DNA of 63,619 nucleotides, filler included, from Lenisia limosa (Eukaryota > Protista > Breviatea): assembly GCA_001655205.1 (NCBI GenBank). It is 12 parts of 12 records of this genome, joined end to end, with 100 filler letters (N's around TTAATTAATTAA, not from the genome) between each part and the next. Parts side by side here need not be neighbours in the genome. Positions count along the whole stretch, not along the records: positions 28,771 to 36,293 come from LPNZ01004011.1; 11 more parts are not named here. The stretch is one strand, 5' to 3'. A program made the translations under genes and the position numbers. Positions 28,771 through 36,393 of this stretch are shown here, piece after piece; the stretch's first letter is position 1, and each line of letters begins with the position of its first letter. The notes below the pieces were generated by a model. The model had not been told where the DNA came from and searched no databases. It saw only the letters and a program-made list of their open reading frames with translations.

Positions 28771-31700
28771 GGTCTGAATGGTGCGGTCCAAGGCTTCAAC
28801 GGACATAATGTGTAGTGAGGGGTCGATATCCTAAAAAGTAAAACGCCGAACGCAAAGAGAAAGATAATCTGAAGATAATCTCGAGGTCAGGAGGGTGGGA
28901 GGTGATGAGGCAGACAATCTAACAAACCTGGGGGGTGAGGCAGGCGCGACCAATGAAGGACTTCAGAAGCTCGGCGGGCTTGATGAAGGAGTGGTATGTG
29001 ACCATGAAGACGTGGACAAAGTTGGGGCGTGGCGTGTCAGGGTGCGTAATCCNNNNNNNNNNNNNNNNNNNNNNNNNNNNNNNNNNNNNNNNNNNNNNNN
29101 NNNNNNNNNNNNNNNNNNNNNNNNNNNNNNNNNNNNNNNNNNNNNNNNNNNNNNNNNNNNNNNNNNNNNNNNNNNNNNNNNNNNNNNNNNNNNNNNNNNN
29201 GGGGTCTTCCTCGTTTTCGCTCCTTATGAAGTCAAAAAAAGCGAATATGGAAGAAACAGAGTTCTGTTATGTTTGGAAAATCATTGCTACCCCCCACTTG
29301 ACAACAACTTCGACCTTATTTTCGGTTTCTTCCTCGACAATGTCTTCATCAGATGAGTCAGACTCAGAGGCCATACGCACACGTTCTGTATTTGATAAGC
29401 CTTTCTTACAATCAAGGAAAATACTGAATTCTTCTATGAAAGGACCGAATAGTCCATTTCGAAACGGATTCACCAACCTTCTTCTCCAGGCTCGAGACCC
29501 TCGGACTCGTCGCCGGAATTGATAACTCCACGGCCGATCATGGGTGTCTCAATATCGCTGTCGCTTTCGCTCTGGTGCGTTAAAAGGGATTTACGCTGTT
29601 GGACAGTATGGTGAAGAGGAAAAGAGGGTTGTTACTGATTGTAGCATGCGGAGGAGGAATATGTAGCAAATGAGAAAAGCAACGAGTGCATTTGAGTAAG
29701 GGTATTGAAAAAGATGGCTATGAATTAATACATACGATATCAAGGGGTGACACCAGGTCCTCTGAAGAGGCGTTAACAAACTGCAGCTTGCTGGCAGTCT
29801 TCTCGGGGTGGAAGTTTTGGTCAAGGTGGGTGGGTCGAAGGTCAAAGTATCTACAGGGTTAGGATACACTGTGAGAAAGGTGTTATGTATGGCTGGAATA
29901 CAGGTATAAAATGATTGGCTCACTTGGCTCTGGCCTGGGCGTTTCTAGTACGGATGATATTACGTCTGTTTTCGAGCTTCATACGCTTAATCGCATCAAC
30001 AATAGCCTCGGCTTCGTCTTCGTCATCATCAATTTCTGAATGATGAGCCTTTAAAGCGCTGTTCAGGTCATTAAAACAAAAGTGAGTCCACAATGCTAAG
30101 CACTAAGAATTCAAAGACAAAAAACAAAAACCGTATTTTAGAATAATAATAATAATAATAATCATAAATATAATAATAAAAAAAAAAGGTCTGGATTCTG
30201 ATTGACTGCTCCTTCATAATTACCCCTCGCCTACCCTTTCCTTCTTGACGCTTCATGCTAGTCACCATTTCGAGCATTCTTTCGAAGGGATTCAAGACAA
30301 GGGTGCAGGTCGCACGGTGAAGAGACATGTTGCCGATAGTCAGAAGAGTCATCAGCATGACAATCAGAATAATTGAGACAAGCGCGTCGCGTCGAACTCG
30401 TCTGAAAAAGTAAATCCCTTCATTTTACTGAAAAGAAAGGTAAAATATCAACAGCAAAGAGTTATCGAGAAAATCAGTGCTTCTGAGAGAAGAAGCCATG
30501 GTGGTAATAATATTCAGACCCACTCGGTGACATCGACAATGGTTGTGAGGGTGCCGACAGAACGAGTTTCCATTCGAGCCTCTTGCAGCTCTGCAATGTC
30601 GTCTTCGTAGTTGATAATCACAGTGCCGTCTGAAGTCAGTGAACTTAATTTTTCAAGCCGTTGCGTATCATATTTATTAAGGTACTGATAGTGCTATTCC
30701 CGACAAAACATTTTATAAGGCTAAACACCCACCAATTGCAAGTTTAAGGATGTCTTCGTCGTGACTGGCGCGATAGAGTGAAAGAGCCGAACCAAAGAGG
30801 TCCGATTGTCCAAGGAGTGGGTCACTGAAATGAATAAATCAGGCATTCGTATCATTTCAGTATATACATATATATAATACATATATACTCATATTATATG
30901 GTTTTTATCTATACAATCATATAGTTTATATAGTTTATAGTAATTATTCAATAAATATCGATATTTTACTCACTTGAAATAGTTCATCTGAAGAATTCTG
31001 AGCTCGCCGTTAATAGCATCATCGTCAATGTAGGAAGATCCCTGCAAAAAATGACTGGTAAAAAAAGCGTAAAATTGATGCTTATTCAGAGCCTAATATA
31101 TGTGCCTACGAAAGAAGAGGCGACAGCATAGATGACGACCGAGAGGAAGATGAAGAGGACGAAGCGTGACGAAATGACGTTGGCAAGCTTGTCGCCCATA
31201 ACACCAGCCTGGCGTGGCTCGGTGTTGATCGGGGCCTCGGCGGCGTTGTCGTCCCATTGGTCAGTGTCCTCTACGTTGCGCTTCCGGAATACTTTCGACA
31301 CAGACGTGAGTCGAGACTGGGGGGTTAAGAGGTGCGGAGCACTCAGTAAACACGCCAAATTGAACCTGAAACAAATTACAATTTGTTGTTCCGAAAATAT
31401 ATAAAGGGGTGGCCTCCTTTGGATATCAGACTGACAAAGAGAAAATAAATACCATCCAAGAGAAGGTACTTCAACACCAACACAGCCAAGCACTCCAACG
31501 TACAAGAGAGAAAAAATAACTAAAAAGTGCATTTACCTGTGATGCTTGATAGAACAGCACACAGAGGATTGCCAAGAGAGCCCATTGCAAACCAGTTTAG
31601 CTGCAGCTCTAGCGGAACGGCCTGACCTAGCAAGGAACAACGCCATGACAGCACCAGGAACTTCACCATCATTGAGAATCATCCAGATGTCGATCACCAA

Positions 31701-32178
31701 AGAAAGGAGGGCAATGGCATCAAGAGCAAAGAAGATCTTCGAAAACTTTGCACGGTCTTGCAGTAAAGTGATCAATAATTCCACAAAGAACACGAAAAAG
31801 ATTACAACCTGCACAAATTAGAAAGGAGGTCACGGAGGAAGGAAAATACCTTCACAATGAGCGATATCATGTCGATTTGACTGCTTTTATCGGTCGTAAG
31901 GATCAAAACATCATCCATAAGTGACACAATCACAATCAGTGGAAGCACAACGAAGATAATGTAGTGAGGAGAAGCGATTAGGCCAGTCAGCTTTTGCCTC
32001 AAAGTTCTGGAGGAAGTTAGCTCCAATAAACAACAACATACTTCTTCTTTGGTTTTGAGGACCTCTGTAGAAGCTTTGAGTCTTGGCTGGACTGCTCATA
32101 GGCAGCTCGGTAAGCAGTGACGCGGTCAGCATCATTAATTTGCTGAACAGTAGAGGAATACTGTCGCCAGGAAGCCAT
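28771..32178 (-). CDS. Multi-pass membrane protein: voltage-sensor/ion-transport-like TM module, HAMP-like linker and RasGEF N-terminal (REM) domain; truncated by the contig end
   Basis: Hand-spliced frame from MASWRQYSS (ATG 32178) through S1-S4-like helices (FFVFFVELL; IFFALDAIALLSLVIDI; FLARSGRSARAAAK), GDKLANVISSRFVLFIFLSVV and DALVSIILIVMLMTLL...LVLNPFERMLEMV, then an acidic linker. After an N gap: ITHPDTPRPNFVHVFMVTYHSFIKPAELLKSFIGR, which matches the SOS-type REM motif [21 protein letters not shown]. Confidence 0.8.
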
Positions 32179-32485
32179 TCTTAAGGAGGAATAGCAACTT
32201 TAACAACAATTTAAACAGCAGAACCAACCAAGTAACTAACCATTTCTAAATATTGACACACTAGATTAAGCGACAATCCGAATTGTATCCAAACTAATTT
32301 TTGGAAAATTTTCTGATTTTTGTTTTCGCTTTTTACAGTAACTGGGTTCCGGGGTACTCGTATTTCAAAAAAACTTTTTTATAAAATCGAGGAAGTGACA
32401 ATCTCTGGAAGTTGTCTGGAACATAGTATCATATTTTTTAAGCAGACAGTACGTGTTTTGAGAGAGTTTAGGAAAGAAATTGGCA

Positions 32486-34899
32486 ATGTCAGGTAAGTCA
32501 CTCCGACTATGGATTAGAATCTATCATTTAATCCATTGAATTATTAATTTTTAACATATTTGTAGAAGACTGTGATCCAGTTTGCTCTGAAAAGGGCAGT
32601 CATTGGGTATGTCAAGCAGATTCTACCTGCGGGTAAGGCCTTTCTGACCGAATGTCTTGTTTCTTATGCTTTAAAGGTGTGAGGACGGGTGGTCTGGAGC
32701 CAATTGTGATAATGGCCCACCAACATGGTGGGAAGACAACCTCATCATTCTGATGCTTGGTGGAATCGTTGGACTCGTCTTCCTTCTAGTTATTGTTATT
32801 TGCATGTAAGAGGGTTATTGAAAAGGTTTTAAACGTCAAAAATATCCTTCCTTCTTATCTGGTAGCAAAAAGAAGCAGGCTCAGAAGCGTCTGAAAGCGG
32901 TAGAGAAGGAGAAAATGTTCAACGAGGCCCGAACAAACCCGGGAACTAAGCTTAACCGCCCCATTGGACGAATCAAGGGTTTGACATAAGCCTCATAAAA
33001 TTTCCTCTCATTTTATTTCAGCACCTCGCTTCCTCTTTCAAATGAACTACAACTACATTGTGATTGGCAGGTACAATCGCGAGGAGTATGTCGATCTTGG
33101 TTTGTTTTTCCGCTGCCAACTGGACAGTTCTGACCTTCGAAGATCTTACTGACTTCCCTGGTGTGTCAACGCAGTACGTTTCCCGTGTACACTGTTCCAT
33201 ATTCCTTGATGAAGATCGCAATCAGTTTATGCTTGAGAACCATGGACGTCATGGAACTTATGTTGATAAGAAGAAGCTCAAGGAGGTGAGATTGATTTGG
33301 AAAGTCTCCTGTCTATTCGGTTTCTTGCATAGAGCGCCTCTTCTTCTTCTACAAAATATTTCCAAAATAGTTGTGTACAATTCTATCACATCATGTTTCC
33401 AACAGCCCTTCGTCATCTGACATGGATTTTAAACATCTTAACCCCACTACCTACGATTGGTTGTTATTCCATGTCTCATTTCACTGCAGAATGACCGTGT
33501 CCGTCTCTATGATCACTCCATGATTGAAATCGGTGGTGCTGAGTTCCTCTTCAGAGATGATATTCACCCCAATCCCAGACAAGTGAGTGAATTGAATTTA
33601 CCGGAGGAGTGGGGTTTTTGAGGACTCCCTCTTTGTTACGAATTGTCTTTCCTGTGCGTTATCTAATTCACGAAGGCAAGTGAATCACGTCGCGGAGCGC
33701 CTCAAGGACGCGCACCCTCGCGGCCACGTAAGGGCGGATATGACGAGTTTGATGACGAGGAAAAGCCCCGCCGCCGCACTCCTAGTTCCCAGCAGGGCTC
33801 AAGAAGCAGACCTCAATCTCGTTATGAGGAGCGAGATAACCGCGATAGCCGAGGTGATAGGAGCGACAGGGGTGACAGTAGGGGACGCGGCAGGGGCGAT
33901 TCACGCAGTGGTGAAGCTCCTCCGTCCCGGCGAGGCAGTTCAAGCAGAGGAAGCGACCGTGGGGACCGTGAACACGCCCCACGCCGTGCGCCCAGCCGCG
34001 AAATGGAGGAGATGTCCAGACCCTCTTCATCAGCCGCCGCTGGCGCGGGTCGAAGAAGCTCGCGTGCCAATGGGGCGAGAAGGCAGCCTCGCGACCAGCC
34101 TCTTGCATGCTTCGATGGTAGGCGGATTTGTGACCTCCCTTTATTTGGACAATACTCTTTTCCTAAATGTTGGACTTCTTCATTCACTTTCCAGCTGGCT
34201 ACTTTGTGTTTGACGTGTACTACGAAACCTGCCTTATCGGTCGCTGTTCTAACGGTGGTCCCCCTGTTGATCTGGGTCTGCTGGCAGCACTACTTGTTTT
34301 TACCAAGAACAAGCAGAATTTCTTGAATAATTATCACTATTGTGTTTTTTTTTGGAATTCACTTTTCTAACTGCTCAGACCTTGGAGAAGTTAAGGGTTG
34401 TGACACCACTCATATTTCTCGCCAGCATGCTAAGCTCAGCTACAACGCTGGATCACAAGAATGGTCGGGGGGGGGGGGGNNNNNNNNNNNNNNNNNNNNN
34501 NNNNNNNNNNNNNNNNNNNNNNNNNNNNNNNNNNNNNNNNNNNNNNNNNNNNNNNNNNAGTATAGGTCTATTGAGTCCCTTGGCCGTAATGGCACAATCG
34601 TAGACGGCGTCCGAGTGGGAGAGAAACAGTCAATGCCGCTGTACAACCGCTCAGTCCTCACTCTTGGCTCCGTGGACTTCACTTTCATCGACAAAACGGA
34701 CATGGTAAGTTCTGATGATATCGTTGTTCACGTTCACTTGTTTTTTGTTTCCGTTTGTCAGAAGCGCGCCTCCCTCGTTTTACCCCTGCAGGAAGATGAG
34801 ATCCAGCCTGCTAGTAACCCGAATCTGGCCCCTGCCCCCCTTGGCTACGATGCTGACCGCGACCCTGCGTACGCCCAGCCCCCTCCCGACATGGTCTAG
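32486..34899 (+). CDS. Single-pass membrane protein: EGF-like domain, TM, FHA, Arg/Gly/Ser/Asp-rich linker, second FHA
   Basis: MSEDCDPVCSEKGSHWVCQADSTCGCEDGWSGANC (6-Cys EGF); TM LIILMLGGIVGLVFLLVIVICI-KKKQ; FHA1 IVIGRYNREEYVDL...VSRVHCSIF...NHGRHGTYVD; FHA2 CLIGRCSNGGPPVDL...HISRQHAKLSY...SLGRNGTIVDG; stop at 34899. Confidence 0.82.
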
Positions 34900-35199
34900 T
34901 GACCTTCTATTTAGCTTTCCGATGCATTTTTGACACCTCGCGTTTAACTGGTGGGCTACAGGCTTTCTCTTTCTTTCTCACTCTCAGACACCAGTAGAGT
35001 TTACGAATAATACATGCATAAATAGATTAATGGACAGTAGAAAGGTCAATGCCTTTTTATTTCTAGCAGCATAGGCATTTAAATGGTTTGCAAGCACATT
35101 TGGTCAAGCAGCACAGACAACTTAGAAGAATACCCAGTCCTCCAAAAGCAACAAATAACTACAACATCAATAACATCATCTTCCGCTCACTTTTTGCTG

Positions 35200-36290
35200 A
35201 TCATTTATGAATTCCTCGTCATCTTCCTAACAAGGTGAAGGAACAGGGAAATATCAACACCAGTTATTGCATAGCCCTGCAAATCTCCATGTAAAGCTAT
35301 CATTTTGTATAACACAATTCATTGCACATACATATCAGGATATGGTATATTGATATCCCCCGACCTTGCAGTTGCCGTCCTGGTCCATGCCGTTGGGGCA
35401 GCGTGCACAGACAACCTCCTGCGAGCAGCCGACTGGCTTGCACTCGTTGAAAGGCTCAGTGCCGCACCCTCCGTTGTTCTTGAGGCACGGGCTCTCCCAG
35501 GTGTCATCGCACTAACATGTTATGATATTTGAAGAAATGACGTACCTCTTCTTCACTAGAAAACTTTAGTGCAATACTTTCGCCGGTTGTGAACTCCCCT
35601 TCGCCTTGCCTCTTGGTACCAAGGCCAAAGTAGGTCAATCTTGAAAGCAATTAATTTGGAACATGATATCAGTGGCAAAGTACAAATCACCCTGTTTTTG
35701 GAACCTACGCAAATGTTGTGTCGACCCGAAAACCGGTTGTTTTGTGGGGCGGGAAAAGATCATATTTATTATCACCAACGGATGCCCTGAATTGTCAATA
35801 TACTCAAATGAAAGCCAACTTGAAGGAAAATTCCACGGTTTTTTGAGGAGAATCAGCTGCATTCAAGAGAATTCTGAAGCCGTTTTGATGGGCTATGTCA
35901 GAAGGTTCGCCATTATAGAAGAGAAGTATCTGATGAGAATAGAAGTGAATGGCCGGATTTTTTCTTAGTTGTAACTTACACTGTTTCCATCAACTGATAA
36001 GGAGATGAATAGGGGCATGACAGTGCTAATCTAATTTGTCAAACTGGATTGTGCTACGAATGAATACGTCACGTTTCCACTTTCAATAGGGAGTATTCAG
36101 TAGTTTATAGTCCTACTTTGGCATCATTACTTCTAGCGACAACATTGATAGTAATGATGTCATCTTTCGAAAATAGTGCCAAATCCCCTGAAATGTAATA
36201 TGGTTTTCAGTTTGGCAGTCTTACCCTTCGTTTTCATTTCGAGGTCTACATTGACGTCAATTTGGAAAGCCTAAAATCGTCAAGAATGTT
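35200..36290 (-). CDS. Cys-rich EGF-like-domain surface protein, partial (5' part beyond the contig end)
   Basis: Exon PCLKNNGGCGTEPFNECKPVGCSQEVVCARCPNGMDQDGNCK, followed by a short hydrophobic C-terminus. Upstream exon-like blocks are present. Confidence 0.55.
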
Positions 36291-36393
36291 CTTNNNNNNN
36301 NNNNNNNNNNNNNNNNNNNNNNNNNNNNNNNNNNNNNTTAATTAATTAANNNNNNNNNNNNNNNNNNNNNNNNNNNNNNNNNNNNNNNNNNNN

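Follow-up and report, generated by a model that had tools for sequence, protein, structure and literature searches.

The locus described here raises the question of whether a membrane module resembling a voltage sensor and a Ras guanine nucleotide exchange factor (GEF) are encoded by one gene in the breviate Lenisia limosa and, if so, which signal the module would pass to the enzyme. The locus lies in a piece of LPNZ01004011.1 (about 42% GC) that occupies positions 28771-36293 of the window, the whole stretch of 63,619 nt, filler included, to which all coordinates refer unless a contig is named. The minus strand of this piece was found to carry a multi-exon gene in which, very probably, a sensor module is fused to a REM-CDC25 exchange factor. 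On balance, we favour the explanation that this is one gene for an integral-membrane Ras exchange factor whose sensor module relays a signal to the GEF. That voltage is the controlling input of the GEF is suggested more cautiously, as a possibility with less than an even chance.

The enzymatic part was identified from its Pfam matches. The first-pass annotation, made from the sequence alone, had recognised a REM motif, and RasGEF_N (PF00618) indeed matched the single 41-aa REM exon at E=7.6e-6 and 26.5 bits over profile positions 16-50, the cut-off of 28.3 bits applying to the whole domain. The CDC25 domain expected past the contig end at 28771 was recovered whole on contig L001 of the European Nucleotide Archive (ENA; 11,668 nt), which extends 4.2 kb beyond this position and carries the remaining part of REM (VRRRVLGTINLWINDHPGDWVDF) and the complete CDC25 domain to the stop, with the CDC25 exons at L001 8403-9302. 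Four CDC25 exons matched RasGEF (PF00617) with 29.1, 28.4, 42.3 and 28.2 bits, each above the cut-off of 23.1, and the matches are collinear (profile positions 2-32, 36-75, 76-109 and 135-162). Precomputed Pfam matches on the open reading frames (ORFs) of L001 agree with them, and the conserved CDC25 blocks MAEQMTLIEEELF, NFNGVMEIISGL, SRLKKTW and CIPMLGVYLSDLTF are present. No Guanylate_cyc match was found by Pfam on any scanned exon of the gene.

Evidence for splicing was drawn from Logan contigs of one polyA RNA run (X1) and one DNA run (X2), over 28771-32600. With the start placed at the first ATG past an in-frame stop (32176-32178), a GT-AG splicing model gave a single open frame through to the stop, comprising 26 exons and 1013 aa when the piece and L001 are combined. 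The strings quoted in the first-pass annotation (FFVELL, FFALDAIALLSL, ARSGRSARAAAK, LVLNPFERMLEMV, EAEAIVDAIKRM, SENEEDP and PNFVHVFMVTYHSFIKPAELL) were all recovered on the minus strand where it had placed them. Its claim that GT-AG introns splice in compatible phases into one frame also held, as the model is open throughout and nine introns within the piece are confirmed by exact RNA-contig joints. The part of the gene within the piece is listed below in the direction of transcription; TM denotes a transmembrane helix, and L003 and the P-numbered entries are relatives described further on.

32042-32178, minus strand: exon 1, predicted cytosolic N-terminus, ending in polybasic KPKKK; splice to exon 2 predicted (GT-AG, 35 nt)
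31850-32006, minus strand: exon 2, S1 (HYIIFVVLPLIVIVSLMDDVLIL) and S1-S2 loop; hydropathy peak; aligns to S1 of L003, P0005 and P0008
31593-31808, minus strand: exon 3, S2 (F105-x-x-E108), S3 (D128) and first half of S4 (R159, R162, R165, K169)
31592-31317, minus strand: intron 3, 276 nt, splitting S4; RNA joint 31316/31593
31110-31316, minus strand: exon 4, second half of S4 (R172, K178, R181-R183), acidic loop predicted to be cytosolic, and TM5; RNA joints at both ends, hydropathy, alignment to P0003
31109-31042, minus strand: intron, RNA contig joint
31041-30974, 30824-30733 and 30629-30524, minus strand: exons 5-7, ectodomain of about 90 aa between TM5 and TM6; all three introns RNA-jointed
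30973-30825, minus strand: intron, RNA contig joint
30732-30630, minus strand: intron, RNA contig joint
30523-30402, minus strand: intron, RNA contig joint
30235-30401, minus strand: exon 8, TM6 and juxtamembrane helix LVLNPFERMLEMV; RNA joints
30234-30036, minus strand: intron, RNA contig joint
29924-30035, minus strand: exon 9, acidic connector and second helix DEAEAIVDAIKRMKLENRR; RNA joints
29923-29851, minus strand: intron, RNA contig joint
29850-29736, minus strand: exon 10, acidic, Ser-rich linker; intron 10 RNA-jointed
29735-29572, minus strand: intron 10, RNA contig joint
29571-29478 or 29571-29474, minus strand: exon 11, acidic, Ser-rich linker; donor predicted; RNA contig 2 ends inside it at 29511
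29298-29433, minus strand: exon 12, acidic linker, predicted only (in-frame GT-AG model)
29222-29201, minus strand: start of exon 13, SENEEDP, running into the N gap 29053-29200
28928-29052, minus strand: exon 14, start of REM (EWITHPDTPRPNFVHVFMVTYHSFIKPAELL...); RasGEF_N match; covered by RNA contig 1; 54% identical to the end of L003
28927-28831, minus strand: intron, RNA contig joint
28771-28830, minus strand: exon 15, REM continued, cut at the edge of the piece; the gene continues in L001 7449-10046

RNA joints also placed the boundary between exons 8 and 9 and the acceptor of exon 11. Removal of the 276-nt intron joins ...ARSGRSARAAAKL to SRLTSVSKVFRKR and yields one long S4-like helix; the joined S4, AAAKL followed by SRLTSVSKVFRK, matches P0003, in which S4 is uninterrupted. 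Nearer the N-terminus, the alignment to P0008 runs through the junctions of exons 1 and 2 and of exons 2 and 3, with a gap of 1 aa beside the former and one of 3 aa about 7 residues before the latter. Exons 1, 2 and 12 have no covering RNA contig in run X1, and the junctions E1/E2, E2/E3, E11/E12 and E12/E13 are without RNA confirmation there. The frame is preserved both with exon 12 and when this exon is skipped via an alternative donor at 29473. The 385-nt intron predicted before the last exon is the least certain boundary of the model.

The N gap between SENEEDP and the REM exon could have been a false join, as the first-pass annotation had recognised, and was found not to be one. It is bridged by a 5831-nt contig of the DNA run X2 ('110 letters between') and by L001 (7035-7166 for the stretch from the start of exon 13 through the gap), which is 100% identical on both flanks, and according to these bridging contigs its real length is 110 nt. 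In this segment, exon 13 comes to its end with 43 nt (SENEEDP continuing into EPDVAAASSVPAMI), a 64-nt intron of the GT-AG type follows, and REM exon 14 contributes 3 nt; in the spliced model the reading frame is unbroken across it. A run of 13 G in the intron is the probable cause of the gap. RNA contig 1 has a 44-letter loose end at 29052, of which the 30 printed letters match spliced exon 13 plus exon 14 and not the genomic sequence. The loose end is thus a spliced junction from which the gap intron has been removed in RNA, and the REM-bearing transcript comes as close as 25 nt to where exon 13 is predicted to begin. L001 was probably assembled from the same reads as the window, because its end nearly coincides with the end of the piece; it therefore resolves the gap and does not replicate the locus independently, while the RNA joint is independent support. 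A second N gap, at 34480-34558 (79 N), corresponds to 47 nt in L001 (1731-1777) and, like the first, follows a poly-G run; it seems that the assembly breaks at homopolymeric stretches of G.

A search by phmmer with exon 3 against 1.84 billion representative proteins gave relatives at E=2.2e-6 and 2.8e-4, with four real relatives besides the window's own ORF. Three of the seven matches (P0002, P0004 and P0007) were tandem-repeat proteins and were set aside as spurious, and a word-index search with the exon 3 ORF returned only the window's own ORF. A MAFFT alignment that included loose exons (A1) was left out of use, as the S1 and TM6 exons were misplaced in it. The closest relative, P0003, is 51% identical and lies on L003, a 2177-nt contig of another sequencing run and organism with the same GC content and introns of about 35 nt. 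On one strand and in this order, L003 carries S1, S2-S4-TM5, the ectodomain, TM6 with LVLTPLEKLL, the second helix DESKEVIKAFQKM and a 130-aa ORF. Directly preceded by a 35-nt GT-AG intron, this ORF stays open from the linker into REM. RasGEF_N matches it at E=1.3e-4, and the start of its REM is 54% identical to that of the window gene (VEAAASVLGMIEWLTY...AHVFLFTYHLF). Overall, L003 and the window gene are 37-54% identical, and their linkers show no significant similarity (score 28.5 against a shuffle mean of 30.7). Judged from these sequences, the architecture of TM module and REM is present in a second, fairly distant organism.

More distant relatives (P0010, L006 and L007-L009) were obtained by a word-index search and a scan of metagenomes of the Joint Genome Institute (JGI). 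P0010, L006 and L009 share with the window protein the sensor, the TM5-ectodomain-TM6 unit and LVLxPxExM, and carry a class III cyclase within about 40 residues of the second helix. L006 matches Guanylate_cyc at E=3e-4. The assignment of P0010 was based on motif reading and alignment to L006; its C-terminal fragment has no Pfam cyclase match, and its only PDB matches are two class III cyclases at E~1. The likeness to the N-terminal module of channel-type cyclases, first noted from the order of helices and the LVxxPxExM motif, is thus upheld down to LVLxP[LIF]ExM, and REM-CDC25 stands where these relatives carry the cyclase, as had been proposed. The sensor module is homologous to its counterpart in the class III cyclases with a voltage-sensor domain (VSD) found in stramenopiles, alveolates and ciliates, the cyclase being replaced by REM-CDC25. 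L007, L008 and L009 are contigs of 17-25% GC with a Lys/Asn-rich insert of about 200 aa between S4 and TM5, and their composition looks ciliate-like.

Other members show the module in different company. In P0008 (L005 344-2200, a Tara Oceans contig) it is preceded by an SH3 domain at the N-terminus and a linker rich in Gln and Pro, and P0005 (366 aa, intronless; L002 178-1278) consists of the module with no enzyme. As read from these sequences, the sensor module combines with several kinds of partner. The contigs of P0005 and P0008 are GC-rich, intronless marine metagenome sequences, and the module there ends in a coiled coil.

Hydropathy analysis disclosed six helices in the membrane module. 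Within the sensor, peaks were located at aa 62-80, 93-111 and 125-143, and S4 is weaker and amphipathic (150-183). The residues of a charge-transfer centre are present in S2 (F105-x-x-E108) and S3 (D128), and none of the family alignments (A2, A4 and A7) shows any variation in these F, E and D columns. The S4 charges are R159, R162 and R165, then K169 and R172, then K178 and R181-R183, with the two halves of the helix joined by the RNA-verified splice; the S4 of the relatives has 5-7 such charges. Built from four family members, the window's exon 3 among them, a profile matched human Hv1 (5OQK) over S1-S4 at E=2.6e-4, with F-x-x-E, D and the R repeats in register with the family. Pfam Ion_trans (PF00520) matched the relatives P0010:240-420 (27.4 bits) and L009 (36.3 bits) above its cut-off of 25, these matches being confined to the sensor part, at profile positions 7-120.

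The sensor of the window protein is tied to these relatives by blastp (7e-16 against P0008, 3e-5 against P0010) and by hhalign, in which the S2-S3 profile of the RasGEF type matched the sensor profile of the cyclase type (94.8%, E=5e-8). Among the protein-language-model atlas features nearest to exon 3, 91 of 100 belong to Ion_trans clusters. The sensor of P0005, at 33% identity to that of the window, was modelled with AlphaFold2 (AF2); the model has four long helices with a predicted local distance difference test (pLDDT) score of 64 and a predicted TM-score (pTM) of 0.48. It superposes on Ci-VSP (4G80) with TM-scores of 0.61/0.65 and a root-mean-square deviation of 3.6 A, and nearly all its other top PDB matches are voltage sensors (a Nav1.7 VSD4 chimera, Nav1.4, Nav1.5, Nav1.8 and SLC9C1). 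The description of these helices as S1-S4-like is therefore supported, and the profile matches and models identify S1-S4 as a probable homologue of voltage-sensor domains.

Six helices in channel order could also belong to a true voltage-gated cation channel with a tetrameric pore built from TM5, the loop and TM6, and with a GEF as its tail. The loop sequence FGSALSLYRASHDED loosely recalls the pore helices of Nav and Cav channels, and full channels are the top Foldseek matches of the whole-module AF2 model of P0005, which is a poor model (pLDDT 56, pTM 0.35) with no significant match. Against this stands that the Ion_trans alignments stop at about position 120 of 241, the end of S4, in all relatives, so that no pore helix or selectivity filter is covered. 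L003, P0005 and P0010 do not conserve the loop motif, which was rejected as a Nav/Cav-like pore helix, and the loop exon has no PDB match. The window protein has no GYG or T-x-E/D-x-W motif, in line with the first-pass annotation, which had seen no K-channel filter, and the published VSD-cyclase family is reported to be devoid of pore-helix homology (PMC12223298). A channel is thus considered very improbable. The TM5-TM6 loop, whose exons gave no Pfam or PDB sequence match, looks like a small ectodomain of uncharacterised fold.

TM6 is followed by a motif, LVLxP[LIF]Ex[ML], that is common to all members carrying an enzyme:

Window protein, post-TM6 motif: LVLNPFERML
L003, post-TM6 motif: LVLTPLEKLL
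P0010, post-TM6 motif: LVLIPLERMM
L006, post-TM6 motif: LVLHPIESMA
L009, post-TM6 motif: LVLGPLEIMI

After the motif come a variable acidic connector and the second helix, a pattern shared by L003 (DESKEVIKAFQKM) and the cyclase-type relatives. The earlier description of this element as HAMP-like stands as far as motif and layout are concerned, and is a matter of pattern only: HAMP (PF00672) gave no match on exons 8 and 9 or on P0010:600-744 at E<=10, nor on the L006 and L009 ORFs at E<=0.01, the test being weak for the window element, which is split over two exons. An acidic linker of about 145 aa, probably disordered, separates the second helix from REM. The order of the helices predicts a cytosolic location for the N-terminus, the S4-TM5 loop and the transducer element together with all that follows this element.

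Several observations weigh against one gene for a sensor-controlled membrane GEF, and they fall on its continuity, its sensor and its coupling. As to continuity, no RNA contig of run X1 connects exon 11 to exon 13, that is, the TM exons to the REM exons, and exon 12 is wholly absent from the RNA contigs. RNA contig depth is 23.4 over REM-CDC25 (28771-29052) against 6.6-7.7 over the TM exons (29511-31692); this threefold step fits the 3' bias of a polyA library and could also mean an extra internal start near exon 13. The single transcript assumed in the first-pass annotation is accordingly established in part: the gap intron is seen spliced in RNA and nine introns are joined, while the stretch from exon 11 to exon 13 is not linked by any RNA contig. 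As to the sensor, the window's own exons, scanned singly, gave no Ion_trans Pfam match, the exons being short, and phmmer with exon 3 and the loop exon gave none in PDB. The structure models are of low to moderate confidence (pLDDT 56 and 64) and their Foldseek E-values are not significant, and small residues (S, G, A), not hydrophobic ones, separate the arginines of S4. As to coupling, P0005 indicates that the module need not drive an output, and the long acidic linker makes a rigid mechanical connection to the GEF unlikely.

The observations on continuity could be explained by two products, namely a stand-alone TM-module protein like P0005 and a soluble REM-CDC25 GEF whose promoter, separate or internal, lies near exon 13, in which case the fusion would be an artefact of adjacent genes. 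Beyond the missing RNA connection, the absence of exon 12 and the depth step, this would account for the end of RNA contig 1 at 25 nt inside exon 13 and for a conserved Met at the start of REM (PAMIEW / LGMIEW); intron 11, if unspliced, gives an immediate stop, and stand-alone modules exist. However, exon 13 is open in frame upstream of this Met and joins exon 11 in frame by two GT-AG paths, and the interval of about 290 nt between the RNA-verified exons 11 and 13 offers no space for a promoter or terminator. Moreover, L003 packs the same order of parts into 2.2 kb, its 130-aa ORF running from the acceptor of the 35-nt intron into REM, and a shorter isoform could coexist with the fusion. Two separate products are thus held to be improbable, and a single gene remains the reading adopted here.

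In such a fused protein, movement of S4, a signal read by the ectodomain, or both would be the input. It would be relayed via TM5 and TM6 and the two juxtamembrane helices, and would release or position the tethered GEF and so promote GTP loading of membrane-bound Ras. Given the length and acidity of the linker, control by release, occlusion or positioning is to be expected more than a rigid lever. The specific version in which depolarisation or hyperpolarisation moves S4 and switches the GEF, so that Ras-GTP would be formed without Ca2+ or a second messenger, is put forward tentatively, as one candidate that has the odds against it.

It may instead be that the fusion is real and the signal is not voltage, the module anchoring the protein to the membrane or the flagellum, or acting as a receptor with ectodomain or ion input, and the sensor helices being a structural relic. 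Ligand receptors have this layout, in which two helices enclose an ectodomain and a two-helix juxtamembrane element comes next. The small residues between the S4 charges point the same way, the long acidic linker speaks against tight coupling, and the module also occurs with SH3 only or without any output. One of the Phytophthora VSD-cyclases is located on one flagellum, its function being unknown (PMC12223298). On the other hand, distant members with just 25-40% identity retain the charge-transfer residues F, E and D and the repeated S4 arginines as invariant or conserved positions, which implies selection on the voltage-sensing machinery itself. A non-voltage input is for this reason regarded as rather unlikely, and a sensor module that relays a signal to the GEF, of whichever kind, is the explanation retained.

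Comparison with known systems sets the window protein apart in its output. It shares with SOS, RasGRF, RasGRP and the Dictyostelium RasGEFs the order REM then CDC25 with the conserved blocks. Those proteins are known as soluble ones that are recruited to the membrane by adaptors, lipids or Ca/diacylglycerol, whereas the window protein is itself predicted to be a six-helix membrane protein; to our knowledge, no integral-membrane REM-CDC25 GEF has been described so far. With the protist VSD-class III cyclases it has in common S1-S4, TM5-ectodomain-TM6, the LVLxP[LIF]ExM helix, the second helix, the lack of pore homology and a cytosolic enzyme thereafter. It differs from them in its REM-CDC25 output and in the inserted linker of about 145 aa, the cyclase domain lying within about 40 residues of the second helix. 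Ci-VSP likewise has a pore-less voltage-sensor domain with a cytosolic enzyme acting at the membrane, but VSP has four helices only and a short linker from S4 to the phosphatase, whereas the window protein adds two helices, an ectodomain, the two-helix element, a long linker and another class of enzyme.

Hv1 is the best sequence match among solved structures, with S2 F-x-x-E, S3 D and S4 RxxRxxR aligned. In the alignment, however, the position of its selectivity Asp in S1 is read as hydrophobic in the window family, the window protein carries additional helices as well as an enzyme, and there is no sign of proton conduction. Bacterial HAMP receptors and cyclases show the same succession of TM, ectodomain, TM, Pro-containing helix, connector and second helix (DE-x-x-x-[IV]-x-x-A-x-x-x-M), whereas the window protein has no Pfam HAMP match and its connector is longer and very acidic.

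Fusions of VSD and cyclase in Paramecium, Tetrahymena and Plasmodium go back to Weber et al. 2004, as summarised in a review which states that no recombinant VSD-cyclase protein has been definitely characterised in function (PMC10651576). The same review lists few non-pore outputs of voltage sensors, namely phosphatases of the VSP type, the Na+/H+ exchanger of sperm and the protist cyclases, which still await characterisation. A 2025 study described PPTG_13136 and PPTG_13761 of Phytophthora parasitica, in which an Ion_trans/S4 N-terminal domain without pore-helix homology is joined to a cyclase; one of the two was found on a single flagellum and is of unknown function (PMC12223298). RasGEF is not mentioned in the supplements of that study, and full-text literature searches for voltage sensor or Ion_trans together with RasGEF returned no description of the architecture, in agreement with the initial statement that it was not known from characterised proteins. 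The novelty is the Ras-exchange output on an already known protist sensor module.

The surroundings of the gene were also inspected. A small divergent gene (32483-32990, plus strand) starts about 300 nt upstream of the RasGEF ATG, with an RNA contig from 32483 at a depth of 12.3; probably one bidirectional promoter region serves both genes and, the neighbour being divergent, the 5' boundary of the RasGEF gene is clean. Further on, at 33000-34900 (plus strand), lies a multi-exon gene with an FHA domain (Pfam FHA, L001 2837-3160, equal to window 33097-33420) and a long Arg/Ser/Gly/Asp-rich low-complexity exon at about 33680-34110. A Cys-rich coding stretch at 35359-35513 has a 96% identical inverted copy at L001 10436-10590, beyond the RasGEF gene, and the ends of L001 (1-55 and 11614-11668) form a perfect 55-nt inverted repeat. 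These inverted copies may mean that the locus is flanked by an inverted duplication, or they may be an artefact of assembly with k=55. No housekeeping gene was found in the piece 28771-36293.

As this gene shows, the sensor module of the cyclase type is portable, and at least two organisms have it attached to a Ras activator. Even with an input other than voltage, the protein would be an integral-membrane REM-CDC25 GEF. Were voltage the input, Ras exchange factors would be a third enzyme class under a voltage sensor, after phosphoinositide phosphatases and cyclases, and the protist sensor module would be an interchangeable input device. If the coupling works, the gene would provide a direct electrical-to-Ras pathway and a natural template for voltage-controlled small-GTPase tools. 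Such a pathway would bear on how excitable or flagellated protists convert membrane events into decisions on motility or polarity.

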